A stretch of DNA of 15,912 nucleotides from Paramicrosporidium saccamoebae KSL3 (GCA_002794465.1 MTSL01000041.1:157479-173390), one strand, 5' to 3'. Positions 144 to 15,200 are shown, counted from the first letter of the stretch. Made by a program: numbers and translations. The notes: generated by a model not told the origin, from the sequence alone.

Positions 144-1466
144 ATGCAGGAGCTTTGTGCAAATAGCACAATGGCGAATGTCGATGAGAATTATTACAAA
201 GTTGAGGAGATTATCGATAGCCGCATTAGTCCCACAAACGGCCACTGTGAATTTCTTGTAAAGTGGAAAGACTACTCTTCCATTTGGAATAGCTGGGAAC
301 CGGCAGTTCATCTACAGCACTGTCATATTGCGCTTGCCAATTTCGAACACGCTCGACGCGCCGCCGAGATTAAGGACGAGGTGACTTTTGCGAAGAAGAT
401 GAAAGAAAATGCAGTGGATAGTCTGCACACGCAACTTGAACAGAAACAAGCAGTACGAATCGAGCGGGAAAAAACAAGGCAACCTGGATCTACACCAACG
501 GATCAATTCGACCATATCTCAAAAAGTCAACCAGGTCCTGCACTGGTAGGCTCTTTGGACTCTGAACGAGCACCCTCCTCCCATTCAGACCACCCTTTTG
601 TCCCTTCGCCTTATGCTCGTCGACGTGGAAGTGTATTTGAGAAATTTGAGAAAATGATGAATTCTTGTGGTGGGGAACTGATCACTGTCGAGAATGAGGT
701 GGACAATGTCTTTCCCCCAGCACATTTTAGGTGTCTTTCTGCACCAATTATCGGGAGTGGCGTTCCCACTTCTGACCCTTCCTTCCTCATTGGATGCACT
801 TGTCACCCAGACCGCCAGTGCCATGACGGCGAGTGTGCCTGTGTTTCCCAGAATCCCGATCCGAGGCGCATCTACTCTTCAGATGGACGGTTGCTCATCA
901 CTTCAGGCCCCATATATGAATGCAACTCCAAGTGCTCCTGTCCATTATCCTGTCCAAATCGTGTTGTTCAGCGAGGACGCACAGTGCCTCTCGTCATAGC
1001 ACGTTATGGCCCCATTAAGGGCTGGGGTGTGAAGGCAGCCGCTGAGATTCCCAAAGGCACTTTTATTGATGTATATCTGGGCGAACTAATCACCACTGCA
1101 GAGGCTACAAGACGAATTGCCTCCGCCAAACATGGCAGGGGAAGTTATCTATTTGACATTGACTTTAATTACGAGGTCGGCACCGAGTCCGCCTACACCA
1201 TTGACGCATATACATTTGGGAACGTCACTCATTTCATTAACCATTCATGCGAGCCCAATTTGAGGGTTCATGCATGTTTTATTGACACGGCAGATCCAAG
1301 TCTGCACATGCTTGCGTTTTTTGCAAAGCGCAATATTGCCAAAGGCGAGGAGCTATGCTTTGACTATCTTGGCAGCCATGGTGCGGCACAGGCTCCTCAA
1401 GGAACACCGGGCCGGAGGCAACCTTGCTCCTGTGGTACATCCAAATGTAGAGGCTTCATTTATTAA
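144..1466 (+). CDS. clr4: Histone H3K9 methyltransferase, Clr4/SUV39H type (chromodomain + pre-SET + SET + post-SET), 440 aa; start could alternatively be ATG 171
   Basis: Chromodomain YKVEEIIDSR...FLVKWKDYSSIWNSWEP; 9-Cys pre-SET (GCTC..C..CAC..IYECNSKCSCPLSCPNR); SET motifs KGWGV, YLGELIT, YLFDID, FINHSCEPN, EELCFDY; post-SET CSCGTSKCRG. Confidence 0.94.
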   Translation: MQELCANSTMANVDENYYKVEEIIDSRISPTNGHCEFLVKWKDYSSIWNSWEPAVHLQHCHIALANFEHARRAAEIKDEVTFAKKMKENAVDSLHTQLEQKQAVRIEREKTRQPGSTPTDQFDHISKSQPGPALVGSLDSERAPSSHSDHPFVPSPYARRRGSVFEKFEKMMNSCGGELITVENEVDNVFPPAHFRCLSAPIIGSGVPTSDPSFLIGCTCHPDRQCHDGECACVSQNPDPRRIYSSDGRLLITSGPIYECNSKCSCPLSCPNRVVQRGRTVPLVIARYGPIKGWGVKAAAEIPKGTFIDVYLGELITTAEATRRIASAKHGRGSYLFDIDFNYEVGTESAYTIDAYTFGNVTHFINHSCEPNLRVHACFIDTADPSLHMLAFFAKRNIAKGEELCFDYLGSHGAAQAPQGTPGRRQPCSCGTSKCRGFIY

Positions 1467-1725
1467 ACTGTAATTTATACTAGCAGTTGGCTCAGCAATG
1501 GACGAGGGGGACACGGGCCGAAGGCAACCTTGCTCCTGCGGCACACCCAAATGTAGAGGCTTCATTTATTAAACTGTAATTTATACTAGCAGCTGGCTTA
1601 GCAATGGACGAGAGGAACACGGACCAAAGGCAACCTTGCTCCCGTGGGTACATCCAAATGTAGAGGCTCCATTAAACTGGGATTTATGACTAGTTGACTT
1701 TGTTATCAATGAACGGGAGGAACAC
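1401..1725. repeat. Three tandem copies of a ~106-nt unit (starts 1401, 1508, 1614; residual GGAACAC at 1719) containing the clr4 post-SET codons, stop, short 3' flank and U1 3' end
   Basis: AGGCAACCTTGCTCC at 1416, 1522 and 1628; CCAAATGTAGAGGCT recurs in each copy. Copies 1 and 2 differ by 8 substitutions and 1 indel; copy 3 is more decayed. Confidence 0.97.
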
Positions 1726-1870
1726 GAGGAACCTCCCACTACCAAAAATTACATGGTTGAGACACCCGGAGGTGTTCACAGCCCATGAGGACGGAACCGG
1801 TTGTGCAATGGACCATCCAGGACCGGAGGCGCTGCCTTCTTGATCACAGCTGCCTCCCCACCAGGTAAGT
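1714..1870 (-). ncRNA. U1: U1 spliceosomal snRNA (~157 nt)
   Basis: The minus strand reads ACUUACCUGG at the 5' end. SL1 is GGAGGC-A-GCUGU/GCAGC-GCCUCC with loop GAUCAAGAAG (U1-70K site). SL2 has GGAUGG/CCGUCC and loop AUUGCAC (U1A site). SL3 is ACACC-UCCG-GGUGU, and helix H is GUGG/CCAU. Sm site AAUUUUUGG is followed by SL4 GGGAGG/CCUCCC. Order and spacing match canonical U1. Confidence 0.96.
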
Positions 1871-1892
1871 GCCGAGCCAGGGTAATTGGCCT

Positions 1893-1900
1893 TATTTATA
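1893..1900 (-). promoter_or_regulatory. TATA box of the U1 gene
   Basis: TATAAATA on the minus strand starts 30 nt upstream of the U1 5' end at 1870; a CCAAT lies at 1960-1956. Confidence 0.75.
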
Positions 1901-1973
1901 GGGCAGTCGGCCTTGATGAGCCGAGTTTGGTTGTGGGTTTAACTGGCGATTTTTCATTGGTTGCTTCACCTAA

Positions 1974-2201
1974 ATGGCGTCACCGTTGGTGAAACTGCTC
2001 CTTTTTGCCATAGGAAAAAAGGTTGCTGCATTCACTATTGCCAAGATTTATGGATTCCCAAAATTATACCGAAGATTAAGTGAGACGAACCGGAGGTTTC
2101 TCTCAAACCAACCGGCGATGAGAGCAAGAGTCCAGAATGCACTCTCCTTTTCATTCAGGCTTCCCAACCGCATACTCAGTTACATTACCAACAGAAAATG
2201 A
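1974..2201 (+). CDS. Small hypothetical basic protein, 75 aa, hydrophobic N-terminus
   Basis: Real ATG in good context (taaATGg). It fills the gap between U1 and the Bfr1-like gene. Sequence LVKLLLFAIGKKVAAFTIAKIYGFPKLYRRL looks protein-like, but no family was recognised. Confidence 0.6.
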   Translation: MASPLVKLLLFAIGKKVAAFTIAKIYGFPKLYRRLSETNRRFLSNQPAMRARVQNALSFSFRLPNRILSYITNRK

Positions 2202-2398
2202 CCTGAGGCTGTATTTAACGCATCTTGGTACAAGGGCGCTGGATATTGGAAATGAGGAGTCACCTCGATGGTAGAGTCTTTTACTTCTTGCAAATTCAGG
2301 CTACGCTCTTTTGGTCCTACTGCTATACTTGTTTTTGTTTCTGTTTGTCCAACTGTATTAGTAATAGAGAATGAATCAAAATTCAATTTATTCGCATA

Positions 2399-2496
2399 CC
2401 AGTTCTCCTCAGTCTGGACCTTGGCAGGCTTCTCAAACTGCGTTTTCAATTCTCCTCAGTCTTGGTCTTGATGGGCTTTTCCAATTGCGCCTTTAG
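2399..2496 (-). repeat. Two-copy tandem duplication (period 47 nt) of the last 16 codons and stop position of the Bfr1-like gene
   Basis: Coding LKAQLEKPIKTKTEEN-TGA (2496-2446) is followed by LKTQFEKPAKVQTEEN-TGG (2449-2399); TTCTCCTCAGTCT is present at 2403 and 2450. Confidence 0.9.
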
Positions 2497-3880
2497 TTCT
2501 TCAACTTGCTTCTCAAGGGCTTCGCGTTGCTTCTCCTTCTCGTCGGCGGCATCATCCTTCTTGGAGGTGAACGACGATTTCTTTGCCTCAATAGCCTCGA
2601 GGAGCTTTGGAACATCAGAGGCGGTGGAGGGGATGGAGAGGCTCAGGTCAGCAAGAGCACTGAGGATGTGGAAGGGCAGCTTGGAGAGGGGGACAACAGT
2701 AGAAGCTGTGGCAGTGTTCTTGTTGTTCTTCTTGCCACCCTTGGCTACGAAGAAAGCCTCGGGTTTCTTCTTGTTGATTGCGACAGCATCGGCAAGTTCA
2801 TCAGACAATTTGACCTGTCGAATTCCAGCCTCAACAGCGGCAACCTCATTAGCAGCATCTTTTTCATCCGATCCAAGAGCCTCCCGGAAAAAGGCCTTCA
2901 AGTTGTTGCACTCGGAAATCTTGCGGTCATTGGCCGTTTCAGGGTTGAAAGCAAGCAGCTTCTCCTCCAACTCCTCCAGCTTGTCCTCCAACTCGCGACG
3001 ACGATCATACTCGGCGCGACGAGCATCACGTTTGACACGGGCCTCAGCTTGAGCCTTCTTGGCAGTCTTGTACTCTTCATAAGCTTTCCGACGCTCCTCA
3101 TAGGCAGCATCAATTTCGGCCTTGACCTTGTCAATTGCAGCCTGGCGGTTTACACGTTCAGCCTGAGCCTCCTTGCTGGATCCAGCCATTTCGTCCAGTT
3201 TCTTGGAGACTTGGTCAGCTTGAGAACGGAACTTTCCAATAATCTCGTCTTTTCCATTAATTTCAGTCCTCAACTTGTCCATGCGAAGCTTCATGGAACC
3301 GACATCGCTTCCGGAGCCGTCAATGTTTTCGAATGCACGACGCGCCTTTTTCAACTTTGAGATTTCAGCCAGAATTTGTTTCTCCTCAATCAACTTGAAC
3401 TGGCCCGACTCAATCTTTGACTCTAGCTCACGGACGCGGTCCTCCATCTCTGGAATGCTGCGGAAGGGGAGCTTGTCCTTGGCCTCCTGAGCCTCGCCAG
3501 TTTTCTTCTTCAGGTCGTCGCGATTCTTGTTGAGTTGTTCGAATAGACGACGACGTTCCTCCTGGTGGGGACGGAGCTCTTCACGCAACTTCTTCGCCTG
3601 CTCAATGAGCAGCGTGCGCTCGTCCTTGTTACCAGACGCCTTTCCCGTGCCTCCAGCGAATAAATCCGCCTACAATAAGTTAATTGCTAAGCTGGCTTAC
3701 TAGACGGGCCTTGGCATCAGCGATTCTACCATCCAACTCGCCCATCTTCTTTTCATATGCCACGTTCACAGGGTTAGGACGGCCGCTGTAAGGCTTCGCA
3801 ATGCCATTCTCTTGCTTTACAGCATCATGTTTGCCAGTCTCCTGGGTAGTAGCAACATTTGTAGCAATAGCGGTAGTCAT
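2446..3880 (-). CDS. BFR1: Bfr1-like coiled-coil mRNP/nuclear segregation protein, join(3880..3701,3669..2446), ~467 aa
   Basis: Long Lys/Glu heptad-rich protein. IPEMEDRVRELESKIESGQFKLIEEKQILAEISKLKKARRAF resembles the conserved Bfr1 segment. A 31-nt intron joins the two ORF-track pieces in frame (..AKARL|ADLFAGG..). Confidence 0.8.
3670..3700 (-). other. Spliceosomal intron, 31 nt (Bfr1-like gene)
   Basis: GTAAGCCAGCTTAGCAATTAACTTATTGTAG; phase 0, removal restores the frame, retention hits TAA. Confidence 0.88.
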
Positions 3881-3969
3881 TGTGTCTCGGGTTAGATGAC
3901 CAGGTGGGCGCAATAAACCAGTGTTCAGGTCCAGGGCAGTATGACCAATCGTAATAACTTTGGCCGACA

Positions 3970-3982
3970 ATGATTGGCTGAA
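3970..3982 (-). promoter_or_regulatory. CCAAT box in the divergent BFR1/PNRC promoter
   Basis: TTCAGCCAATCAT matches the NF-Y/Hap consensus and lies ~90 nt upstream of the BFR1 ATG. The same core occurs at 6104 and 7258. Confidence 0.55.
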
Positions 3983-4074
3983 AGCCCTGACCGGTTTTAG
4001 CTTAACTAGCAGGGTGACTACGCGCACTCCATAGGTTGTCTTGTACATAGCACCGAAACTGTACGATAGGGAAG

Positions 4075-4162
4075 CAGTAACAATTCACTGCCATAACAGC
4101 AACAATTTACTGCCATACCAGCAACAATTCACTGTCATAACAGCCACAATTCACTGCTATGC
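4075..4162 (+). repeat. 4 x 22-nt minisatellite (CAGCAACAATTCACTGCCATAA) whose fourth unit contains the PNRC-gene start codon
   Basis: Units at 4075, 4097, 4119 and 4141, each 1-3 mismatches from consensus (4 in unit 4). ATA at 4093, 4115 and 4137 aligns with ATG at 4159. Confidence 0.96.
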
Positions 4163-4707
4163 AAGTTTCTACCGAGCAGCCCACCAAGGGCAAGAAGAAG
4201 CAAAAGAAAAAGAGGCAGAATAGGACAGAACAGACGCCTCCCAGGAGCATGTCCGTCCCCACTGGAAAGCAGCCACTTCCACCTCTACAGCCAGCACGGC
4301 CGACAATCATGCAGGCCAAAGAACGTGCCATGGCCGACGCGCTCTTTGCATCGTCTTCGTCCCAATGGTATGCTGGTGCGGCGTTTGACCGGTCGCCTGC
4401 CGCAAATACTCTCCCTCGTCCCACCAGACTGCTGACCAAGTCGCCGACCAAAGAGGAGGGACAGAATGTAATGGCATCATCTTGTCCCGTCAGTTCGATT
4501 TTGGCTGAGCGGACGTCCCTCACCTCTCCAGGGACACGGACAAGAATGCCGACACCGCCGATGGATTCCAATCTGCGACAAAAGTCGCGTGATTTGTTAA
4601 ATTTGCTGCGTTCCGAACCGCAGGCGGTGACTGTTCAGGACAAAAGCAAGAGCGAGGATTTAGAGGAAATGACTCGACAGGTTCGCAAATTGCTGAATAT
4701 ATCCTAG
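4159..4707 (+). CDS. PNRC/Edc1-like proline-rich protein (probable mRNA decapping activator), 182 aa
   Basis: Motif WYAGAAFDRSPAANTLPRP matches the PNRC/Edc1 YAGxxFxxSPxxxxLPxP motif. N-terminal basic patch KGKKKQKKKR; C-terminal helices SRDLLNLLR and TRQVRKLLNI; otherwise disordered. Confidence 0.8.
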   Translation: MQVSTEQPTKGKKKQKKKRQNRTEQTPPRSMSVPTGKQPLPPLQPARPTIMQAKERAMADALFASSSSQWYAGAAFDRSPAANTLPRPTRLLTKSPTKEEGQNVMASSCPVSSILAERTSLTSPGTRTRMPTPPMDSNLRQKSRDLLNLLRSEPQAVTVQDKSKSEDLEEMTRQVRKLLNIS

Positions 4708-4763
4708 TGTGCTTATAAGGAAGTCTTTGCTTCCAGCCTCACATCCCCGTTATGGTGTTGGGA

Positions 4764-5036
4764 GACGATTCAATGGGTTCATCATATTCTAAGAGCTTTT
4801 ATTATTGTCGAGACGATTAAAGCAGTGCTTTTTAGAAGTTTAGTATTGTTTAAGGTGCACATATGATAGATTCAAAGGGCTCCTTGAATCCTAAAGCAGC
4901 GCCTTTTAAAAGTTTAGTATTGTTTAAGATGCACATATGACAGATTCAAAGGGTTCCTCGTATCCTAAGAGCTTTTATTAGTGTCGAGAAGGTTAAAGCA
5001 GCGTTTTTTAGAGGCTTCATATTGTTTAAAACGCAT
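4764..5036 (-). repeat. Tandem triplication (~102-nt unit; middle copy has a 28-nt deletion) of the kinase gene's last ~24 codons, stop and ~30 nt of 3' flank
   Basis: CTAAGAGCTTTTATTA at 4789 and 4965; TAAAGCAG in all three copies; AGTTTAGTATTGTTTAAG twice; GATTCAA(A/T)GGG three times including a partial unit at 4764. Confidence 0.95.
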
Positions 5037-6105
5037 TACAGCATAAGACATGTAGTCGAATGGAATGTCTGAAAACAGGGCCTGCACCAGTCCCCATAAT
5101 CCCCAATAAAAGTGTGATGCGAGTGTAAACAAGTTGACTTCAACATAGAGCGCTTCTATCTCGACGTCTGTAGCAGGTCGGCCATAGTATTGTTTCCAAT
5201 ACGCAGCGAGCCATGGTAGTTGTTGCTCGCGGGTGGGATACAACGAGTAGTCGCATTGGAAGCCAGCAAACTCGCAGAAATGATTTGCAATGTCGTAGCC
5301 ACGATAGTTACTGCAGCCGTACTCGAAATCAATAAATTCCACGTCATTCTTTTCCTCCTCATAAATAATATTTCCGGAGAGTAGATCGTTGTGACAGAAT
5401 ACAATGGGGGACTTTAGCGCTGAAAGTGTCAATTCAAGCCGCTCCAGTTCCAATTTTAGATATCCAATATTCACATTCTGCTCAAAGATGCTCTGCGTCT
5501 CCTTTACCGGGTAGGAGGCTGGGATTCCTTTGAACCATTTCCACAAAGTACGGAACAGATTGGCCTCTTTCCCACCGGCACGGTACAGCTTGTGCCACAC
5601 TGCAACCTTGCGTGCAACTAGCTGGGACAGTTTTGGGTCTGACATGTCTGGCACCGAGAAGGGCCGACCCTCAATGTAGCCGTAGACAAAGCCGTTCGTG
5701 AAGCGTGCGTACAGCGGCGGCGATAATTCGGCCTTGCTCAGAGTCACAAAGTTGGTTAGCTCGGCCATGCGGTCGATAATGAGCTCAGACTTTTTACCGT
5801 ATGCCCTAATGAGCACAGTAGTGTCCAGCTCCTTATTTATGCACTTGACAACTACAAGTTATAAACGATACACATGGATTACGTTTGTTAGTGATGCCAT
5901 CCTTACACTGGACAAACTCGACCTGGCTTACATTCCAGGTGGGAAAGACGCGACAAAGTAGCGTCTTGCAAGAGGCCATCAGGTCATTATGAGCAACAAC
6001 GTAATCATGAAGCGGCACCTTGCCCAAGACAAAGGTCTCTAAAGCAGATAGCGATGGTGTCTTGCGGTGCGCAAGGTGTGAGCAGGATTCCAATGACTCG
6101 TGCAT
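4965..6105 (-). CDS. Ethanolamine/choline kinase, join(6105..5883,5851..4965), ~369 aa
   Basis: DGITNK|L..VLIRAYG across a 31-nt intron; Brenner motif FCHNDLLSGNII; IDFEYGCSN..DIANHFCEFAG; HFYWGLWGLVQ. The first in-frame ATG is at 6105. Confidence 0.93.
5852..5882 (-). other. Spliceosomal intron, 31 nt (kinase gene)
   Basis: GTAATCCATGTGTATCGTTTATAACTTGTAG; phase 1, removal recreates the conserved GITNKL. Confidence 0.92.
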
Positions 6106-6145
6106 GATTGGCTGAAGCAGCAGGGCATTGGGTTTTGTTAGAGAA

Positions 6146-6211
6146 TTGGAGTGTTTTTGGAGTATTGGAGCATTGGAGTATTGGGGTGTTGGAGTGTTGG
6201 AGTATTGGATA
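6146..6211. repeat. ~8 copies of an 8-nt unit TTGGAGTR upstream of the kinase gene
   Basis: ttggagtg-ttt-ttggagta-ttggagca-ttggagta-ttggggtg-ttggagtg-ttggagta-ttggata. Confidence 0.92.
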
Positions 6212-6351
6212 TTAGACACTAAACGCTATTCGACAGTTTCGAACACTTTGGAAATTTAAACCTGAACAAGTCGAGTGAACGAATGGTATACAATTGCCTA
6301 TTATACTCGAGACAATCATATGACATGGATGAATATTATACAGATTATGAT

Positions 6352-6937
6352 CTATGAAAGAACTCCAAGGTAATCCTCTTTAACAGTTCCAATGGCAAAC
6401 ATTTCAGTGGCGTCAATTCGGGTTCCAACAATTTTTAAACGAACCATATCGCCTGGCGAGATTTTCACATTTTGCTCCTCAGACATGTAACATGGCGGCA
6501 CTGAACCTGGCTCAAATTTGAAATCACCAGGAATCAACTACAACTTTAACCCCCACGAGTGTGTATTACGTGATTGGAAACAAAAACTTGGAGTGGCCCA
6601 AGGTTGGCAAAGAAGCCCATTTTGTTCACTGTGGCCACAATTGCATCCACCGTCTCATTTTTGTACGGCTTCAGCACCACCGCTGTATATCGTACCGCAA
6701 AGGCTACACTTCCAAAGCTATCCTGCACGACACCACTATCGATATGGTCGACAGCCACGATGGCCACTATGTAGCCGTAACGACCGTTGCAGGTGCCCTC
6801 TACTTGACGGTAAAGCTGCAGACGCAAGTGGTCACGTAATTGTGGACCTAGGAATTTGGGCTCCAGTGTTATGGTGTGCTCTAGCTCCTTCTAATAAAAA
6901 TTAGAAGACAGGCTGGCGATGATACGAGAAAGAACAT
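6352..6937 (-). CDS. RPB7: RNA polymerase II subunit RPB7, join(6937..6926,6890..6570,6537..6352), 172 aa
   Basis: Spliced product MFFL|KELEHTITLEPKFLGPQLRDHLRLQLYRQVEGTCNGRYGYIV...VFVSNH|LIPGDFKF...FAIGTVKEDYLGVLS has Rpb7 motifs and the expected length. Confidence 0.96.
6538..6569 (-). other. Spliceosomal intron, 32 nt (RPB7 intron 2)
   Basis: GTAATACACACTCGTGGGGGTTAAAGTTGTAG; phase 0, removal restores VSNH|LIP. Confidence 0.92.
6891..6925 (-). other. Spliceosomal intron, 35 nt (RPB7 intron 1)
   Basis: GTATCATCGCCAGCCTGTCTTCTAATTTTTATTAG with a CTAAT branch-like motif; removal restores MFFL|KEL. Confidence 0.92.
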
Positions 6938-6979
6938 CCTAGTGCCACAACCCTTGTAATGTAATGGAGGTAATAGAGA

Positions 6980-7074
6980 TATTTATTCGCTACTTATATT
7001 CGCTATTTGCTCGCCATTCATTCAATAGCTGTCCAGTGTTCGCCCGATAATATGCGAATAAATAGCCTTTGTAA
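6980..7074. repeat. 11-bp perfect inverted repeat (73-nt spacer) plus direct repeat TATTCGCTA x2 in the RPB7/Pumilio divergent region
   Basis: TATTTATTCGC at 6980-6990 and GCGAATAAATA at 7064-7074; TATTCGCTA at 6984 and 6997. Confidence 0.6.
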
Positions 7075-7257
7075 GAGTACTGCCTCTCAGAATTGCTCAA
7101 TGTGGCAACAGACAAACCATTTATTTTGCCAGCTGGGCTGTAACTTGCCATATTATCATGGACTAGACAACTTAAAAACCGCTTTCAAATTAGAATGAGC
7201 AGCAGTAGGAATTTCCATCTGCTTTACAGAATAATCACAGTGTATCATATTGCGATA

Positions 7258-7267
7258 ATGATTGGCT
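7258..7267 (-). promoter_or_regulatory. CCAAT box upstream of the Pumilio gene
   Basis: ATGATTGGCT (AGCCAATCAT on the minus strand), ~100 nt before ATG 7366. Confidence 0.5.
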
Positions 7268-7365
7268 TGGGCCTCTAGGCGCGCAGGCCTGGCAGTACCG
7301 CAGCCGCCACCGTACCCATACCTGGTCAATCCATCCATCCTGTACCATACACCAACCGACCTCAA

Positions 7366-9409
7366 ATGAATCCTCAGGGATATGTCGCAGGGTCGGGCGA
7401 CACTTACACTATGCCACAACCCAGCAAGTCGCGCAGCAAAGTACATTTTGCATGTTGCCTCACACCTTTGTAGTTTGTGGACTTTTTGGCTGGTGATAGA
7501 GATTTAGCGCCGAGTTCGGGTGTCGAGCCAAGCCGGTCTTGTTCAGCACCACCCGCCGAACGGCTATTCATGCCAGCGCCGATGGAATCTTTGCAGGAGG
7601 ATGACCCTCGGCTGGACCCCACGTATCCTGCATTTTTCCATTCCCACAGTCGTCTTGATCCACGTCTCCCGCCTCCATTCTATTCTCCAGGCCAGTCTTG
7701 GCAGCAATTATGGCCACTATCCTCGCTCGGTCCCGCAGGATCGTCGCAGTTGGCAATGCTGGATGGGGTGGGTGGAAATGACGCAGACCTTGACCATGCC
7801 TCAGCGCCAGCGAGACAATCGTTGGTGGACCGAATTCAGGCAGACTTTCCTCGTACTCCATCGCCCGTCTACGCCAACACACTGCGAGCGTTACGGCATT
7901 CAAAGGAAAATTTGAGTTCTCTGCATTCAGCCACTGGTGCGGAGCAGAGCACTGATGATTTCTTGACCTTTTCTATGGACCGGTTAGCGCTTGAGGAGGA
8001 GAGACGGACATTGAAAGCAGTCCAAAGACAAGGAAACCAACCGAGTGCATCTTCCAGCGCCGAGTTTGAATGGAACCGACAGGATGGAACTCTGTTTGGT
8101 GCGCAGAATCCTCGCACCGCCAGTGGCGTTTCAATTTCCCTTGGCGCTCTTGGAAAGGGACGTGGCAGCGAACAGAATGCAGCACGACCACCCATGTTGG
8201 CTGAAGATATCGGCTTTGGAATGATTGCACCCGGAGGTCCTATTCCCCTCAACTCGTCGCCATTCCTCCCCGCTGCTGGCAACCGACAGGCCAGTTTACT
8301 CGAGGAATTTCGTGCCAATAGACTTCGGAAATTAGAGCTGCAAGACATTATTGGGCATGTGGTAGACTTTAGTAGCGACCAGCATGGTTCTCGATTCATC
8401 CAACAGAAACTAGAAACGGCCAACAATGCAGAACGGAATATTGTGTTTGTGGAAATTATGCCGCAGGCCTTACAGCTGATGACTGATGTTTTTGGAAATT
8501 ACGTGATACAAAAGTTTTTCGAATATGGCGCATTGGATCAGAAGATTGGCCTGTCCAAGACGCTTCAGGGACACGTTCTTTCCCTCTCACTGCAAATGTA
8601 TGGCTGTCGTGTCATCCAAAAGGCGCTGGAGCATCTACCAGCCGAATATCAAGGCAAAATTGTTGCTGAACTCGATGGCCATGTTTTACGGTGCGTAAAG
8701 GACCAGAATGGAAATCACGTGATCCAGAAGTGCATTGAATGCGTTCCCTCGGATGTCGCCCCCTTTGTCATACAATCATTCAAAGGACAAATCTTTACAC
8801 TTGCAACGCATCCATATGGCTGTCGTGTGATCCAGCGGATATTTGAACATGGTGCCGAGATGCAGTCCCGACCCTTGATTGACGAGCTACACCGATTTAC
8901 GACAAATCTTGTGCAGGATCAGTATGGAAACTATGTCGTTCAGCACATTTTGGAAAAGGGCCCCCCAGAGGACAAGCACGAAATTATCAGCAAAGTCAAG
9001 GGAAATGTGCTGACCTTTTCCCGACACAAATTTGCAAGCAATGTGGTGGAAAAGTGTGTTGCTAATGGCAGTCGCTCTGATAGACAAGCGCTCATTGAAG
9101 AGGTCCTGGAACTGTTGCCTGATGGGTACTATTAATATTGCTATGGATCTCATTGATAGGACATTTCCTCTTTTGCTAATGATGCGCGATCAATATGCAA
9201 ACTATGTCGTTCAAAAAATGTTGGACATGGTGGATGGAGAACAGCGGGAATTGCTCCTTTCCCGGATGAAGCCGCATCTGTCCTCGCTGCGGAAATTCAC
9301 CTACGGCAAGCATATCTTGAGCAAAGTTGAAAAGTTACTTGGGTACGCAGTGCCTGAGGCCACTGGCGCAAAGAACGATGCACAGCCGGGTATTGCTCGG
9401 TCACGGTAG
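7366..9409 (+). CDS. PUF3: Pumilio/Puf3-type RNA-binding protein, join(7366..7440,7474..9125,9160..9409), ~658 aa
   Basis: Eight PUF repeats with recognition motifs SRFIQ, NYVIQ, CRVIQ, NHVIQ, CRVIQ, NYVVQ, SNVVE, NYVVQ, and C-terminal [15 protein letters not shown]. Repeat 8 is reached through a 34-nt intron. The first exon is inferred from a 33-nt GT-AG intron and is less certain. Confidence 0.93.
7441..7473 (+). other. Spliceosomal intron, 33 nt (Pumilio intron 1)
   Basis: GTACATTTTGCATGTTGCCTCACACCTTTGTAG; joins an ATG-initiated exon to an ORF lacking a nearby ATG; retention ends in an in-frame TAG. Confidence 0.72.
9126..9159 (+). other. Spliceosomal intron, 34 nt (Pumilio intron 2)
   Basis: GTACTATTAATATTGCTATGGATCTCATTGATAG; phase 2, removal restores DG|[18 protein letters not shown]. 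Confidence 0.9.
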
Positions 9410-9634
9410 ATTGTGCCAACAAGCAAATGTGCAAATGTGACATATGTAACTAGTATACACGCAGTAGTAATGCAAGCGAGTTTTGCCCGTGAGGAGGCGG
9501 TGTGATGAATTGAGTAGTGTAGTGTATTGGGTTGAGTTGTAGTTGCAGTTGTTTGTTGGGAATGTGAGGGATTCGATAGAAAGAATAAGAGTGATTTTAT
9601 TTAAGTTATGTAAAATTCATTTAGACCGTCTGTC

Positions 9635-10720
9635 ATGCGACTTTTCCCAAAGTTCCCGTCTCCGCTGATACAGGGACTATTCAGACGACTTCATGGCTCC
9701 CTTGGGAAAGACTTTGAGTGCAGGGAAGTAGATTTGGAGCCTCTTCAGTTTGATGAGCCTATGGACGACAGGATACGCCCGCAGCTACCCTCTTTCCACG
9801 AATTGTCTTGCGGCGGGTATAATGGACGTCTTGCCGTGGCCTATCGTTCCGCAAACCGGACACAAAACATCCTATCCATCATGGAGACTATGACTGCTGC
9901 AGGCGAACGACCTGCCAGCACCCTCTCGTACAATTACATTTTGTGTGCATTACTCGAGTCCGGTCGACCGAAGGATGCCCTGAGTCTGCTGCGGGAGATG
10001 GAGGTGCGTGGATTGCAACCTGACGTCTTTACATTTGAAATTCTGCTGTTAGAGTTATCAAAGGACTCGGTGATGGCTGTTACTGTTGACGAGCTCTTCC
10101 ATTTGATGCGGGTCAGATACCATTTGGTGCCTACTGGCCTTTGCTGGTATGCTCGTCTCCGCTCTTGGATGAGTCGACGTAATGAGCAACGAGTTTTGCA
10201 ACTTGTGGCCTCCACCCTCTCCCTGCGCATCGATCCCAATCTGTATTGTACTCTGTGCAAATTGGCCCTGAATCGGAACCTGTGGGAGGTGGTAGAATAC
10301 CTTTTTAGTCTGTTTGAGAGCGGCGGGGTTCGATTGACAGCCCAACAGTACTATCGACTATGGCAGACCAGACATGGTCGGATTTCGCCTCGGATGGTGC
10401 CTGCTACACGAACAATTTTTGACCGACTAGATGGATTTTTACTAGATGAAGGCACCTATGTCCGGTTGCTATACTTTTGCTCTCGGATTGGAAGTTCCGT
10501 GTCCGATCTCGCCTTTGTGGCCTTTAGGAAACTCTCCATGATCTACAAAGAGATGGGCGAGACGGCACTGCCTAAGATGTACCTTGAGGCATATGTGGCC
10601 TGTCTGGAGAAGGAGACGGATACACTGTATCAGCGGCCGCCCTACCGGATCGAATCGCGTCTTGATCCCCGACATACCGAACTGGCTCAAAAACTCAGCC
10701 TGCTCCTCAATAAACCCTAG
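9635..10720 (+). CDS. Pentatricopeptide repeat (PPR) protein, probably mitochondrial, 361 aa
   Basis: Canonical 35-aa PPR motif TLSYNYILCALLESGRPKDALSLLREMEVRGLQPD followed by degenerate helical repeats; Arg/Leu-rich, acid-free N-terminus MRLFPKFPSPLIQGLFRRLHGSLG. Confidence 0.85.
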   Translation: MRLFPKFPSPLIQGLFRRLHGSLGKDFECREVDLEPLQFDEPMDDRIRPQLPSFHELSCGGYNGRLAVAYRSANRTQNILSIMETMTAAGERPASTLSYNYILCALLESGRPKDALSLLREMEVRGLQPDVFTFEILLLELSKDSVMAVTVDELFHLMRVRYHLVPTGLCWYARLRSWMSRRNEQRVLQLVASTLSLRIDPNLYCTLCKLALNRNLWEVVEYLFSLFESGGVRLTAQQYYRLWQTRHGRISPRMVPATRTIFDRLDGFLLDEGTYVRLLYFCSRIGSSVSDLAFVAFRKLSMIYKEMGETALPKMYLEAYVACLEKETDTLYQRPPYRIESRLDPRHTELAQKLSLLLNKP

Positions 10721-10819
10721 ACTGTATCCTGTAGTATTGTGGGAGATGGTATAGCTGTCGTGCAGCTAATGATGGGTCTTATAGCCTCAAATATGTACTT
10801 TATTGTTTCTTTATACAGA

Positions 10820-11182
10820 TTAATAAGCTCCGGGACCCCAGGAGTTGGAGGAGTTGGGACTTTGCGGACTGTTATAGCTTGGCCGCTGGGGCTGACTAGT
10901 GCATGAACAGTGAAGCTTCATCTTTCGGCGCTGCTGCTGTCCGAAACGCGATCCCTGACCATATTGCGGGGGTGGCGACTGTCCATATGAAGGGTTTTGT
11001 TGTCCGTACTGTGACGGAGGTTGCTGTCCGTACTGGTAGGAGGGTGGCTGTCCATACTGCGATGATGGCTGTCCGTATGAAGAGCTTGGTGGTTGCCCAT
11101 ATGCAGAATTGGGCGAATATCCCCAGTCGCCAGAAGCATTGGCAAGGGCAAGGGTGCTGATCGCTATAACAAGAAGTTTCAT
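10820..11182 (-). CDS. Secreted low-complexity protein with (S/Q)YGQ(Q)PP repeats, 120 aa
   Basis: ATG at 11182 with signal peptide MKLLVIAISTLALANA; seven YGQ units plus FGQ; C-terminal HCSC. The ORF track's longer start is a non-ATG codon. Confidence 0.8.
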   Translation of the reverse strand: MKLLVIAISTLALANASGDWGYSPNSAYGQPPSSSYGQPSSQYGQPPSYQYGQQPPSQYGQQNPSYGQSPPPQYGQGSRFGQQQRRKMKLHCSCTSQPQRPSYNSPQSPNSSNSWGPGAY

Positions 11183-11388: not shown

Positions 11389-11898
11389 CTAGAGGATCGG
11401 TGCAGGATGGCATTTAATTGTTTGCTGTTGTTTTAGCTCAAACTGCCCGGGAGAGATTTCCTTCATGTTGATTGTATGAGTGGTGACCTGACAGTTCATT
11501 GTCCCACCCGTCTGTTGATGCATCTTGGTGGGAGGGCTGGCAAAGACGATTTTTTGTTCACTGGGCACCACCAGATACTGGATATGGTCCGTGTGTTGTG
11601 TGGGTTGAGTCTGAACCAACTGTGGATGTTGAACCTGGACTGACTGTGGGGGTTGAATCTGGACTAACTGTGGGGGTTGAATCTGGACTGACTGCGGGGG
11701 TTGAATCTGGACTAGTTGTGGAGGCTGAATCTGGACTAATTGTGGGGGTTGAGTCTGGACCGGTTGTGAATGCTGGGTTTGGACCAACTGCACGGGTGCA
11801 TCATGATGCATTGATGTTGATGCGACGCCAAAGAGGAAAACTATCGCAAATTCTGCGCTGAGCGCAAGCTGCATCCCAAGTTTGAGATCGAGAATCAT
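11389..11898 (-). CDS. Probable secreted Gln/Pro/Val-rich repeat protein, 169 aa (161 aa if started at the second Met)
   Basis: Hydrophobic segment FAIVFLFGVAS near the N-terminus; 8 x PQLVQIQP-type repeats; C-terminal domain with two Cys (MNCQV...IKCHP). Confidence 0.75.
   Translation of the reverse strand: MILDLKLGMQLALSAEFAIVFLFGVASTSMHHDAPVQLVQTQHSQPVQTQPPQLVQIQPPQLVQIQPPQSVQIQPPQLVQIQPPQSVQVQHPQLVQTQPTQHTDHIQYLVVPSEQKIVFASPPTKMHQQTGGTMNCQVTTHTINMKEISPGQFELKQQQTIKCHPAPIL
11602..11793 (-). repeat. Coding minisatellite, 8 x 24 nt (PQ[L/S]VQIQP)
   Basis: GGTTGAATCTGGACT(A/G)ACTG(T/C)GGG-type units on the + strand. Confidence 0.95.
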
Positions 11899-12200: not shown

Positions 12201-15200
12201 ATGGAGGACAAAACACGTCGGCTTCCTTTGGAGTATGCAAACGTGCTGTCCCAGTGGACGTATCACTGGGTGGGCGCGGTCATGCATGCGGGCGTAAAGT
12301 TGGGAATGTACACTGTCCCCACCAGTCTCACCACATACACCAACACTCGACGGTTCCAAGAGGTGTGGAAGAAGGAGATATGTTGGACGCGTCTGGCCAT
12401 TATGTTTGGGGGAGGGCTCTTTTGGTGGAGCGGCGTACTGGCGTTGGCAGTGGAGATATTGAGCAACAGCAGTACACGGTGCATGCGCAACTTTATTGAC
12501 ACACTAAAGGGGACTGACGAGAGTCAGCGTTATTTCTGGGCAGAGCTGTTGCTTGTAGTATCGCTGGGCCGACGGGTTGCACTGAACCGTTCAATGGAGG
12601 TCATCTCGACGATTGCGTATATGCTACGGGCGGGAGTAATGGGGACAATGTATGAACGTCTGTTGGTAGCACGACGGATGTGGGCAGTAGGAAGCGGCTT
12701 TAACCGTCTGACCGTGGACAGCACCCGCCTGTCAGCACTGTTTCTGTATGTGCATCTGTTCTGGTCGCATCCACTGCGGATTCTGTTGGCCTTTCATACG
12801 GCGTGGGTGATGCAGGGTGTTCCAGCGTTGGCAGGGATAGCCTTTGTCAGTGGTATCATCTGCACATTGTTTTGGATTGCACGTCAAATGCGAATTGTAC
12901 GCCAACAGTTGGCACTTTTAGCCGATCAGCGACTTCAGTTGACCAGTGAAGCACTAACGACGCTTCGGATGGTCAAGACATTATCACTTGAAGAGGTTTT
13001 TGCTCAACGTATCGACTCGATCCGTCGTGTGGAGCTGCGTGGAATTCGTTGGTTAAACACGCTGTTTGCGCTGTCGGCGTCATTGAACTTTTGGTCGCCA
13101 GTCTTTGCCACAACGATTGTGGTGGTGGTGGCGACGCTGCAAGGAGAGATATTGCAGCCGGGAAAGGTATGTGCAGTAGCACGGACATTCCAAGCACTAA
13201 TGGTTCCGTTGTGGATGTTACCAATGATGGTTAATCGACTCATTGCGACGGCCGTCTCAGTGGAACGTATTGATGAATATCTCTCTGTCGATACTGTGGA
13301 GGAGGCTGAAACGACACCAAATCTGATCTTGGATCACGTAGACTTTTCCGACTCGGGTCAGGTGCTGCTCCGCGATATAAAGCTTGATTTGCGTTCCCCG
13401 GGACTGATTGGGGTGACAGGTGGCACAGGGAGTGGAAAGAGTGCATTTCTAACGGGACTGGCAGGATTGTTGGATGACACGGGTCCATATCGTCCTCCAA
13501 TAGAGTTGGGATACTGTCCAATGCCTGCTTGGCTGAAGAGGGACACTGTACAAGAAAATATTCTTTTTGGTCGACCACTTGAGCTGGAATGGTACCAAGT
13601 CGTCCTGTCAGCCTGCGCCCTGACGGAGGAATTGCGTGATGATCAATTAGTTGGCGAGAATGGCGTATTGTTGAGTGGGGGGCAACGTCAGCGAGTGGCT
13701 CTTGCCCGTGCCCTATACGGTCGTCCGCATCTCCTACTGATGGATGATATTCTGTCATCATTGGATCCCCGTATTTCCCGACACGTCTTTGACGCGTGTT
13801 TTTCTGAAAAAGGCATTCTTCCCAATTGTGTTCGACTAATTGTCACCAATGAACAAGAATATCTCTGTCGATGTGACAAGGTGCTATTAGTGTCTGATGG
13901 ACAAATTTCCGAGTTGGTTAAATCTACCGGATCTACTGAACCTACTGAATCTACCGAATCTACCGAATCTACCGCACCTACTAAATCTACTGAATCTACC
14001 GAGTCTACCGAACCTACTGTATCTACCGAATCTACTGAACCTACTGAACCCAACCAGTCCATCGAATTAGCTGAACCGATCGAGTTGATGGAACCCGCTA
14101 CAATCAAGGATCAGAACGAAGTCATTTTGAAGAGCACTCTTAGAGAATTGACTAGCACATTGGTAAGGGCAGTGGGAGGGATAGTGCCCATGGGACTTTT
14201 ATTTTTGGTGGTACTGTGCACTGATTTGAGCAGTTTGGGACGTGACATTATCCTACACAATCGACTGCAATCGGCCGATTCATCGACGCTGAATTTCCTC
14301 CTTACCGTTACGATAATGGGAACTCTTCAAGGGGCACTGACGGCATTCGCTAATCTAACGGCCGTGTTCCTGTGCCATCGCTCGTCCACGCGCATCCATC
14401 AAGAAGCCCTGCAACGCATATTGAGGGCGCGGATGGAGGCGGTGGATGGGGTGCCCACTGGTCGTCTGCTGAACCGTCTGGGTCCCGATTTGGAGACGCT
14501 CGATTATACATTTCCTGAGAAACTGATTGCCTGTATGGGCACCCTCAGCTCCTTCCTCTGCACCATATTGGCCTTTTGGTATTTTGTGCCCCTTTTGTTA
14601 CTCACTTTGCCCATCACTCTGTTAGTAGCAGTGCTGCTGCAACGACGTTTTGCGCGGGTATGGACAGAGTTATTGCGTCTGTCAGGAGCCGCATTGGCGC
14701 CCCTCTCCGCTCTGCTTGCTGAAACGGCAGTTGGTCTCCCCACCCTGCGCATCTTTAATCACACTCCGCATTATCTCCAGCGCTTTATGCGTTTCTGCGA
14801 CCAATACACGTTAATGGCGTATTTAGGCATTGGGGTGCGTCGTTGGATAGCCTTCCGTTGTCATTTAATAGCCATATTGTATTTGGCTGCAATTGTTGTC
14901 TATTGCATTGTGGCCAAGGTCGATGCCAGTACTGCCGGAATGCTGTTAATGTATGCTATGCGCACTGGCGAGTCTATCGAATGGATTGTGAAACAAATTG
15001 CCGAAATGGAACATTGTCTTGTTGCTGTAGAGCGTGTCTCTCTCTATACACGCACCCTCCCTTGCGAGGAATTTGGGGCGGAGGTGGTGGATGGTGGCGA
15101 TATTGTCATTGACAATCTGTCCGTGTCGTATGAAAATGTTCCTGTGCTCCGTCAGATTTCCGTAACCATTAATAACGGATGCAAAATGCTTGTTGTTGGC

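Follow-up and report, generated by a model that had tools for sequence, protein, structure and literature searches.

Ghost copies of gene tails at three convergent junctions in the compact genome of Paramicrosporidium saccamoebae

Repeated gene 3' ends were analyzed in the terminal 15,912 nucleotides (nt) of scaffold MTSL01000041.1 of Paramicrosporidium saccamoebae KSL3 (GCA_002794465.1), a stretch called here the window, in which three genes are followed directly by degenerate copies of their own last codons and stop codon (ghost tails). P. saccamoebae is an intranuclear amoeba parasite of the Rozellomycota; its genome is 76% gene-covered with repeats reported at only 0.53%, and was assembled from short reads only (80-nt Illumina reads, Velvet, k = 53) (PMC5701793). 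The sample was widened leftward by 33.7 kb along the same scaffold, giving 49.6 kb in all. An N scaffold gap directly precedes the window, and a strong "repeat" detected immediately to the left of it was rejected as a false positive, being this run of N. Arrays were detected with Tandem Repeats Finder (TRF), a repeat finder and alignment of units. In the tail test the final 100 coding nt of a gene were aligned to the following 300 nt and the score was compared with shuffles to give a z value; in the head test the initial 100 coding nt were compared with the 300 nt upstream.

The window contains a gene for a clr4-like H3K9 methyltransferase (171-1466, plus strand; alternative ATG at 144, stop TAA 1464-1466), which has the Pfam domains Chromo, Pre-SET and SET and a C-terminus that aligns to its end with those of relatives. 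Convergent with it lies the U1 spliceosomal small nuclear RNA (snRNA) (1714-1872, minus strand; Rfam RF00003, 95.8 bits, full length), found in the same place in five relatives. A conserved gene of 75 amino acids (aa), not annotated in GenBank (1974-2201, plus strand), faces a BFR1-like gene (2446-3880, minus strand; stop TGA 2446-2448) whose product is 98% identical to a GenBank protein of P. saccamoebae and has a C-terminus matching those of relatives, and a gene with a weak PNRC motif (4159-4707, plus strand) faces a choline/ethanolamine kinase gene (4965-6101, minus strand, the start near 6101 being approximate; Pfam Choline_kinase, 6.6e-80), the exon structure of which is as in relatives. 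The introns of the BFR1-like and kinase genes, both on the minus strand, are merely 31 nt long (3670-3700, GTAAGC...TAG, and 5852-5882, GTAATC...TAG, respectively). An earlier reading of the DNA made from the sequence alone (the sequence-only reading) had named clr4, BFR1-like, kinase and PPR genes, and domains and homology bore these identities out, the PNRC match being weak. The widths that it gave for the convergent gaps were exact: 247 nt for clr4/U1 (1467-1713), 244 nt for the 75-aa gene/BFR1 (2202-2445), 257 nt for PNRC/kinase (4708-4964) and 99 nt for PPR/YGQ (10721-10819).

The clr4/U1 array was reported by TRF at 1400-1673 (period 106, 2.6 copies, 88% matches), and by alignment it occupied 1400-1726, as three units of 104-107 nt plus the 9-nt start of a fourth. 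Within a unit, the last 64 coding nt of clr4 and the stop codon, set in an ATTAAA, are followed by about 35 nt of spacer and by the final 4 nt of U1. Unit 1 (1400-1506, plus strand, as are the other units) is the real gene end, with the last 64 coding nt and the stop at 1400-1466 followed by 39 nt of spacer, and opens with the left arm AGGAACAC (1400-1407). Unit 2 (1507-1613) carries a ghost tail with intact frame (EGDTGRRQPCSCGTPKCRGFIY and then a stop) and a degenerate U1 3' box. Unit 3 (1614-1717) carries a ghost tail with a 1-nt insertion, which shifts the frame, and a 4-nt deletion at the old stop, and it alone keeps the U1 3' box; it also includes the final 4 nt of U1. The array ends with the right arm AGGAACACG (1718-1726, plus strand); this arm lies in the terminal stem-loop of U1 and agrees with the unit start AGGAACACC at 1400 in 8 of 9 positions. 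The stem sequence of the right arm is also present in the relative L008, indicating that this homology predates the duplication and was not created by it, and the left arm lies within constrained clr4 coding sequence. This layout is that expected of microhomology-mediated tandem duplication (MTD) and fits it well. The unit swallowed the whole spacer of that time, about 35 nt.

The likely U1 3' box, ATAACAAAGTCAAC (1693-1706, minus strand), stands just downstream of U1. The motif ATAACAAA(A/G)TCAA or close variants of it occurred approximately 8-20 nt downstream of U1 in six genomes, those of P. saccamoebae and of the relatives L002, L005, L006, L007 and L008, and this conserved motif is probably the snRNA 3' box. 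Units 1 and 2 have a common derived loss of the box and are 92% identical to each other, each being about 85% identical to unit 3, indicating that the array arose in two steps. Of the three clr4 tails, the genuine one is that of unit 1, that of unit 2 is still open and that of unit 3 is frameshifted; the clr4 tail and the U1 3' box each survive only in the copy adjoining their own gene, clr4 in unit 1 and U1 in unit 3. Such complementary decay is the pattern that would be expected of extra copies free to decay.

The BFR1 array consists of the source unit (2447-2493) and one ghost (2400-2446, minus strand), which repeats the final 47 nt of the gene at 47-nt spacing with 74% ungapped identity. 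The ghost begins at the final base of the stop codon and reads TGG in place of its own stop. A shift of 47 nt, not a multiple of three, puts it out of frame; its translation is KTQFEKPAKVQTEENW, compared with KAQLEKPIKTKTEEN and a stop in the real gene. The facing 75-aa open reading frame gave tblastn matches in L002, L005, L006 and L007, syntenic and in the same orientation (E values from 1.6e-8 to 1.9e-19). Its conservation in four relatives indicates that the BFR1 junction is truly convergent, as are then all three junctions. A search of the residual 197 nt of this gap for older, decayed repeats revealed none above shuffles.

The kinase array extends over 4767-5047, and TRF reported a 74-nt period over 4818-4968 (89%). 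In transcript orientation it consists of K1, a 74-nt unit and K3. The proximal K1 (4943-5047, minus strand) comprises the real last 80 or so coding nt, the stop TAG (4965-4967) and 22 nt of spacer; the distal K3 (4767-4868, minus strand) is a 102-nt copy whose ghost keeps AATAAA and TAG, followed by spacer. The segment 4767-4853 pairs with 4943-5029, 176 nt apart, and K1 and K3 are 85% identical. Between them a 74-nt tandem duplication (4892-4965 and 4818-4891, 89% identical, minus strand) lacks the segment with the stop and AATAAA and spans the 102-nt copy junction. In the simplest history a 102-nt segment would have been duplicated first (copies 85% identical) and a 74-nt segment later (89%). 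The sequence-only reading had counted three copies of the kinase tail; the third repeat is present, and the "middle copy" is better read as this later 74-nt duplication across the copy junction. It had also described the units as coding tail and stop alone: tail and stop are indeed copied, and the clr4 and kinase units include a further 37-39 nt or so of spacer, bringing them to 106 and about 102 nt.

In the tail test the three ghost tails gave z = 39-43 (clr4), 29 (kinase) and 7 (BFR1). Eleven other 3' ends in the same test, eight of the window and three of the left flank, gave z between -0.8 and 2.2. The genes facing BFR1 (z = 1.8-2.7) and the kinase had no ghost tail, and the PPR/YGQ gap, which served as negative control, showed no repeat, as the sequence-only reading had reported. 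TRF, the repeat finder and the tail test agree that three genes have their coding tail and stop repeated downstream, in 3, 2 and 3 copies, and without the extra copies the gaps measure 35, 197 and 81 nt, close to the earlier figures of about 36, 197 and 81. In all three arrays the copies stand head to tail with no unrelated spacer between them. The copied segment is only the last 47-80 coding nt and the unit borders lie inside coding sequence, which is not the trace of a whole-gene duplication. Each of the degenerate copies lies beside its source gene and is noncoding, the BFR1 ghost having lost its stop and its frame and clr4 unit 3 being frameshifted. Folding of the repeat units as single-stranded DNA gave z between -0.9 and 1.2 and revealed no hairpin terminators or structured elements. 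The ghost tails are genuine, recurrent and independent local duplications.

The distribution of ghost tails and arrays was determined over the 49.6 kb. In the 33.7 kb outside the window the tail test detected no strong ghost tail among about 22 protein 3' ends. Two weak ones were found, both convergent: in a 183-aa Tudor-like gene 22-nt units start in the last 20 or so coding nt (z about 3.5), and in a 170-aa methyltransferase-like gene the tail is repeated 72 nt downstream (z = 5.4). Ghost tails were present at 5/23 convergent and 0/9 tandem protein 3' ends, a difference that is not significant (p = 0.17). The absence of ghost tails from tandem 3' ends, noted earlier for the window, held over the larger sample. 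The targeting of 3' ends by orientation that had been proposed with it was not established, arrays being present also at tandem and divergent junctions and in coding sequence. The alignment of gene tails to the following 300 nt with shuffles, which the same reading had suggested for the whole genome, gave a similarly divided outcome on the 49.6 kb: three tails stood far above chance and no rule of orientation emerged. Strong ghost tails were found at 3/11 3' ends in the window and 0/22 outside it (p = 0.03), a biased comparison in that the window had been flagged for these repeats.

Eleven noncoding or boundary arrays were detected, at 5/12 convergent, 3/9 tandem and 2/12 divergent junctions; the frequencies at convergent and divergent junctions do not differ significantly (p = 0.19). 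Those at tandem junctions include a 35-nt unit in 3.3 copies after a tetraspanin gene, a 25-nt unit in 4.3 copies and an 8-nt unit in 7 copies; the last lies in the kinase 5' region, at the junction with an Rpb7-like gene (6157-6213; TRF and repeat finder). At a divergent junction a 22-nt unit is repeated 4-5 times and ends exactly on the PNRC start codon (4053-4162, plus strand; TRF and repeat finder). The last unit of this array reads ATG and the upstream units read ATA, so that no upstream start codon is created. In 9 of the 11 noncoding arrays the fractional part of the copy number is at most 0.3 (p about 0.002), that is, whole units plus a short remainder.

Five arrays lie in frame within coding sequences, with periods of 24, 24/72, 9/27/36, 39 and 36, all divisible by three, compared with only 2/11 such periods among noncoding arrays. 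These coding minisatellites are in a YGQ-rich secreted protein (window 10997-11059), a Q/P-rich secreted protein (24-nt unit, 6.8 copies; window 11596-11790), the linker of an ABC transporter (9-nt unit, 14 copies; window 13921-14050), an RRM protein (39-nt unit; L012 17241-17380) and a SANTA-domain protein (36-nt unit; L009 6863-6940). Copies of gene starts ("ghost heads") were found in 0/25 genes, compared with ghost tails in 5/33 (p = 0.05). The sole signal in the head test was an internal RRM domain repeat and was rejected as a ghost head.

The junctions were then compared with those of relatives, in which the gene order PPR, Pumilio, Rpb7-like, choline kinase, PNRC, BFR1, 75-aa gene, U1 and clr4 is kept at 53-68% BFR1 protein identity. 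At the PNRC/kinase junction relatives have 43 and 55 nt (257 nt in P. saccamoebae), at the BFR1/75-aa gene junction about 60-108 nt (244 nt) and at the U1/clr4 junction about 105-223 nt (247 nt), and no long-period arrays were found at these three junctions in the relatives. Within the 49.6 kb, the 12 convergent gaps measure 13, 32, 38, 45, 75, 99, 101, 244, 247, 251, 257 and 435 nt. Seven of them are only 13-101 nt long, six being free of repeats and one having a weak repeat. Since most convergent gaps are short and without arrays, a spacing of about 250 nt between convergent genes is not needed, and neither the sample nor the comparison of orthologous junctions that the sequence-only reading had called for upheld its suggestion of about 250 nt as a rule for such junctions.

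A relative with 90% amino-acid and 87% coding-DNA identity (L010, Logan SRR16214429) was used in an attempt to date the arrays, and its spacer did not align to that of P. saccamoebae at all. Copies within an array are nevertheless 74-92% alike, indicating that the arrays are younger than that split. The arrays appear lineage-specific, relatives lacking them at the same junctions, and young. Counting arrays with a period of at least 15 nt and a TRF score of at least 70, we found 13 in the 49.6 kb of P. saccamoebae and, in the contigs of relatives, which break at young repeats, 4 in 11 kb of the nearest sampled relative (L007 and L022, Logan DRR438482) and 1 in 60.7 kb of four more distant relatives (p = 0.0003 compared with P. 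saccamoebae). Public read sets hold uncultured relatives of P. saccamoebae: that in DRR438482 has 68-72% protein identity and is likewise rich in tandem arrays, and that in SRR16214429 encodes a PDI-like protein 90% identical to the P. saccamoebae one. A scan of metagenomes with the single clr4 protein gave no matches, and with an alignment it gave only distant fungi (28-46% identity), unusable for junctions; the SRR16214429 relative was not among the matches of a homology search with the BFR1 protein.

We consider it likely that the ghost tails arose as side effects of ordinary local tandem duplication, microhomology-mediated or by replication slippage, passed through a selective filter in a compact genome. 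The sequences show how the repeats are built, the microhomology arm in U1, the succession of events, the way in which copies decay and where arrays lie over the 49.6 kb; both the molecular mechanism and the neutrality assumed here are what we infer from the arrays. P. saccamoebae and its nearest sampled relative would undergo local tandem duplication unusually often, or tolerate it unusually well. With original spacers of only some 35-200 nt, a duplicated unit of 47-106 nt would nearly always reach the neighboring gene. For starting gaps of 35 and 81 nt with units of 106 and 102 nt, every protein-neutral placement includes a gene end, and for the 197-nt gap with its 47-nt unit simple arithmetic gives about 38% of neutral placements. 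A duplication running from the last codons past the stop would leave the protein, the stop codon and a stop-linked poly(A) hexamer unchanged, and could therefore be nearly neutral and persist. Duplications within coding sequence would survive only in frame, and those copying a start codon would be purged. In-frame coding arrays together with the lack of ghost heads are expected if duplication occurs everywhere and selection removes changes to proteins or upstream starts. The extra copies would then decay, and the presence of two copies could ease further rounds, giving arrays of two or three units. Among the mechanisms that the sequence-only reading had put forward, microhomology slippage finds a good fit in the clr4 array, and the idea of a system directed at convergent 3' ends, or at a width of about 250 nt, is unsupported.

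Several observations weigh against this explanation. Only the clr4 array has a long and convincing arm: the BFR1 arm GCG-AAT needs a gap, and the arms of the kinase array (GTCT for the 102-nt event, about 3-6 nt for the 74-nt event) are, like it, too short to serve as evidence. Every one of the five ghost tails lies at a convergent junction and the three strong ones fall within 3.6 kb; with so few cases, a real positional bias is conceivable. In addition, the four convergent gaps with arrays are 247 nt (35 plus 212 added), 257 nt (81 plus 176), 251 nt (about 87 plus about 164; L009 3589-3839) and 244 nt (197 plus 47) wide, an agreement that a purely neutral process does not predict; when the gains are permuted among the starting gaps, only 1 of 24 arrangements is as tight as 244-257 nt. 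Finally, the contigs of the relatives are short-k-mer assemblies that break at young repeats, and the absence of arrays from them is in part an ascertainment effect.

This agreement in gap length could alternatively reflect adaptive re-expansion, in which, after compaction, selection favors duplications that restore room for 3'-end formation or termination, up to about 250 nt. Before duplication the gaps spanned just 35 nt at clr4/U1 and 81 nt at PNRC/kinase, the U1/clr4 gap is at least about 105 nt in every relative, the four gaps have similar widths despite very different additions, and ATTAAA is kept in all three clr4 units. On the other hand, convergent gaps of 13-101 nt persist on the same scaffold with at most one weak repeat among them, relatives manage with 43-55 nt at PNRC/kinase and about 60-108 nt at the BFR1 junction, and similar arrays occur at promoters and tandem junctions. 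In addition, the U1 3' box has been lost from the two clr4/U1 units away from U1, and the middle kinase unit is without AATAAA. Adaptive re-expansion is therefore unlikely in our judgment. In a wider form, tandem duplication would be a length-restoring process by which compacted spacers regrow toward about 250 nt, through selection or a length-dependent mutational bias. Such a process would explain the four convergent gaps of 244-257 nt, and the one array-bearing tandem gap that also measures 250 nt (window 6102-6351), despite their differing starts and unit sizes. With n = 4 and a post hoc choice, the coincidence is a lead and not evidence of a set point, and we give a length-restoring process little credence.

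Equally doubtful is a mutational hotspot at convergent 3' ends, where DNA breaks or fork stalling at the meeting of convergent transcription units (collisions, R-loops, supercoiling) would raise the rate of duplication. All five ghost tails, three strong and two weak, are convergent, and arrays are somewhat commoner at convergent than at divergent junctions. Neither difference reached significance, however, and tandem junctions bear arrays at a similar rate. Arrays in frame within genes indicate that duplication is not confined to junctions, and the repeat units have no unusual DNA secondary structure according to the folding z values.

An assembly artefact, with Velvet at k = 53 placing repeats or alleles of 80-nt reads wrongly in tandem, might be suspected from the short-read-only assembly and from the N gap immediately before the window, and it is very unlikely. 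The copies differ by 8-26% plus indels, exact repeats within the arrays reach at most 46 nt and no 53-mer occurs twice in the 49.6 kb, so that every copy is anchored by unique k-mers at the k of the assembler, in agreement with the sequence-only reading, which had thought an artefact improbable. An artefact would also not be expected to yield an ordered, function-dependent decay of the copies. The presence of unique k-mers in all arrays implies in turn that arrays of younger age and higher identity would have escaped assembly, and that array density is probably underestimated. That the ghost copies code for alternative C-terminal exons or readthrough extensions, as the kept frame and stop of clr4 unit 2 and a GenBank clr4 model reaching through the array to 1788 might suggest, is very unlikely given that neither the BFR1 ghost nor clr4 unit 3 is in frame, that the copies are not bridged by splice signals of the local GTAAGY...TAG type, that the real C-termini match those of relatives and that the final part of the GenBank model is antisense to U1.

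The arrays of P. saccamoebae, read as filtered local duplications, belong to an already known kind of repeat, of which clr4/U1 is a neat case of complementary decay. MTD has been described as a frequent, frame-filtered source of tandem repeats in Schizosaccharomyces pombe and widely beyond, and as the principal origin of such repeats in fungi and elsewhere (PMC8639346; bioRxiv 10.64898/2026.02.28.708716). As in MTD, duplication is head to tail between short direct repeats and followed by expansion to several copies, with a frame-preserving bias inside genes, freedom outside them and distances between arms of about 50-150 nt. In contrast to MTD events, which are subclonal and reversible, the P. 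saccamoebae arrays are fixed, diverged and present in the reference assembly, and only one of the three has a clear arm. A class of stop-spanning duplications is not mentioned in these two papers, and our literature search found no paper singling out such duplications in compact genomes. In yeasts, minisatellites and tandem arrays of "one CDS plus gene relic" (CDS, coding sequence) have been reported, and coding-sequence minisatellites can persist outside coding sequence (PMC2822764). Like those relics, the ghosts are degenerate, nonfunctional coding copies beside their source gene in a compact fungal genome. Yeast relics are mostly remnants of whole genes, whereas here the copy is the last 47-80 coding nt plus spacer, and the unit may include the end of the neighbor (U1).

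Two further parallels concern the fate of duplicated segments and the compactness of genomes. Animal mitochondrial genomes undergo tandem duplication-random loss, and duplicated genes can follow duplication-degeneration-complementation. As in both, the duplicated unit carried two functional elements, here the clr4 tail and the U1 3' box, and each was kept in one copy. Unlike in duplication-random loss, the surviving copy at clr4/U1 was forced by adjacency to the gene body and not random, and gene order is unchanged. Microsporidia are known for genome compaction with overlapping transcription, and the literature on them describes shrinkage. P. saccamoebae resembles them in its very short spacers, its poly(A)-like signals at or inside the stop and its convergent genes tens of nt apart, and it differs in that local duplications add length back in one lineage.

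The finding offers a readable example of how duplications are filtered in a compact eukaryotic genome, being kept across stops, kept within genes only in frame and absent across starts. At one junction two abutting genes, clr4 and U1, shared a single duplicated spacer that was later partitioned between both. Were the coincidence at 244-257 nt to extend to the whole genome, it would suggest that spacer length is under a constraint, something not known for compact genomes.

The hexamers at gene ends were also examined. In 10/33 genes, compared with about 0.6 expected, the first base of an AATAAA or ATTAAA falls between -15 and +14 nt relative to the last base of the stop, and in four genes the stop codon itself is the TAA of the hexamer. 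Examples are ATTAAA at 1462-1467 in clr4, AATAAA at 4976-4981 in the kinase gene, 14 nt before its stop, and the hexamer at 10704-10709 in the PPR gene. The hexamers that the sequence-only reading had noted at the clr4 and kinase ends are present and are to be seen as part of this general pile-up at stops. Its further point that duplication copies them along applies to all three clr4 units and to K3, and fails for the middle kinase unit. The pile-up suggests very short 3' untranslated regions, and with the usual short cleavage distance the ghost copies would fall outside the mature mRNA.

The ghost copies have misled public annotation, carrying the clr4 model into antisense U1, and gene finders for such genomes should expect this. 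That GenBank model, of 854 aa, extends across the scaffold gap and on through the ghost copies to 1788. Public gene models of the window are often fused or overextended (1-1788, 4965-7446, 9179-10720): the Rpb7-like and choline kinase genes are fused into one model of 626 aa, and the PPR model includes the last Pumilio exon. The GenBank protein-coding tables have no call at the 75-aa open reading frame (1974-2201), nor at the U1 locus except for the clr4 model antisense to the 3' part of U1. Elsewhere on the scaffold, the PDI-like and BAR-PH-VASt genes converge across a gap of 435 nt that contains a 25-nt direct repeat, TATAAACAACTCAATCG(T/C)GAATCA, as its only internal similarity. The repeat occurs twice with 24/25 identical positions, 286 nt apart, at L009 11555-11578 and 11841-11865 (window -6098..-6075 and -5812..-5788).

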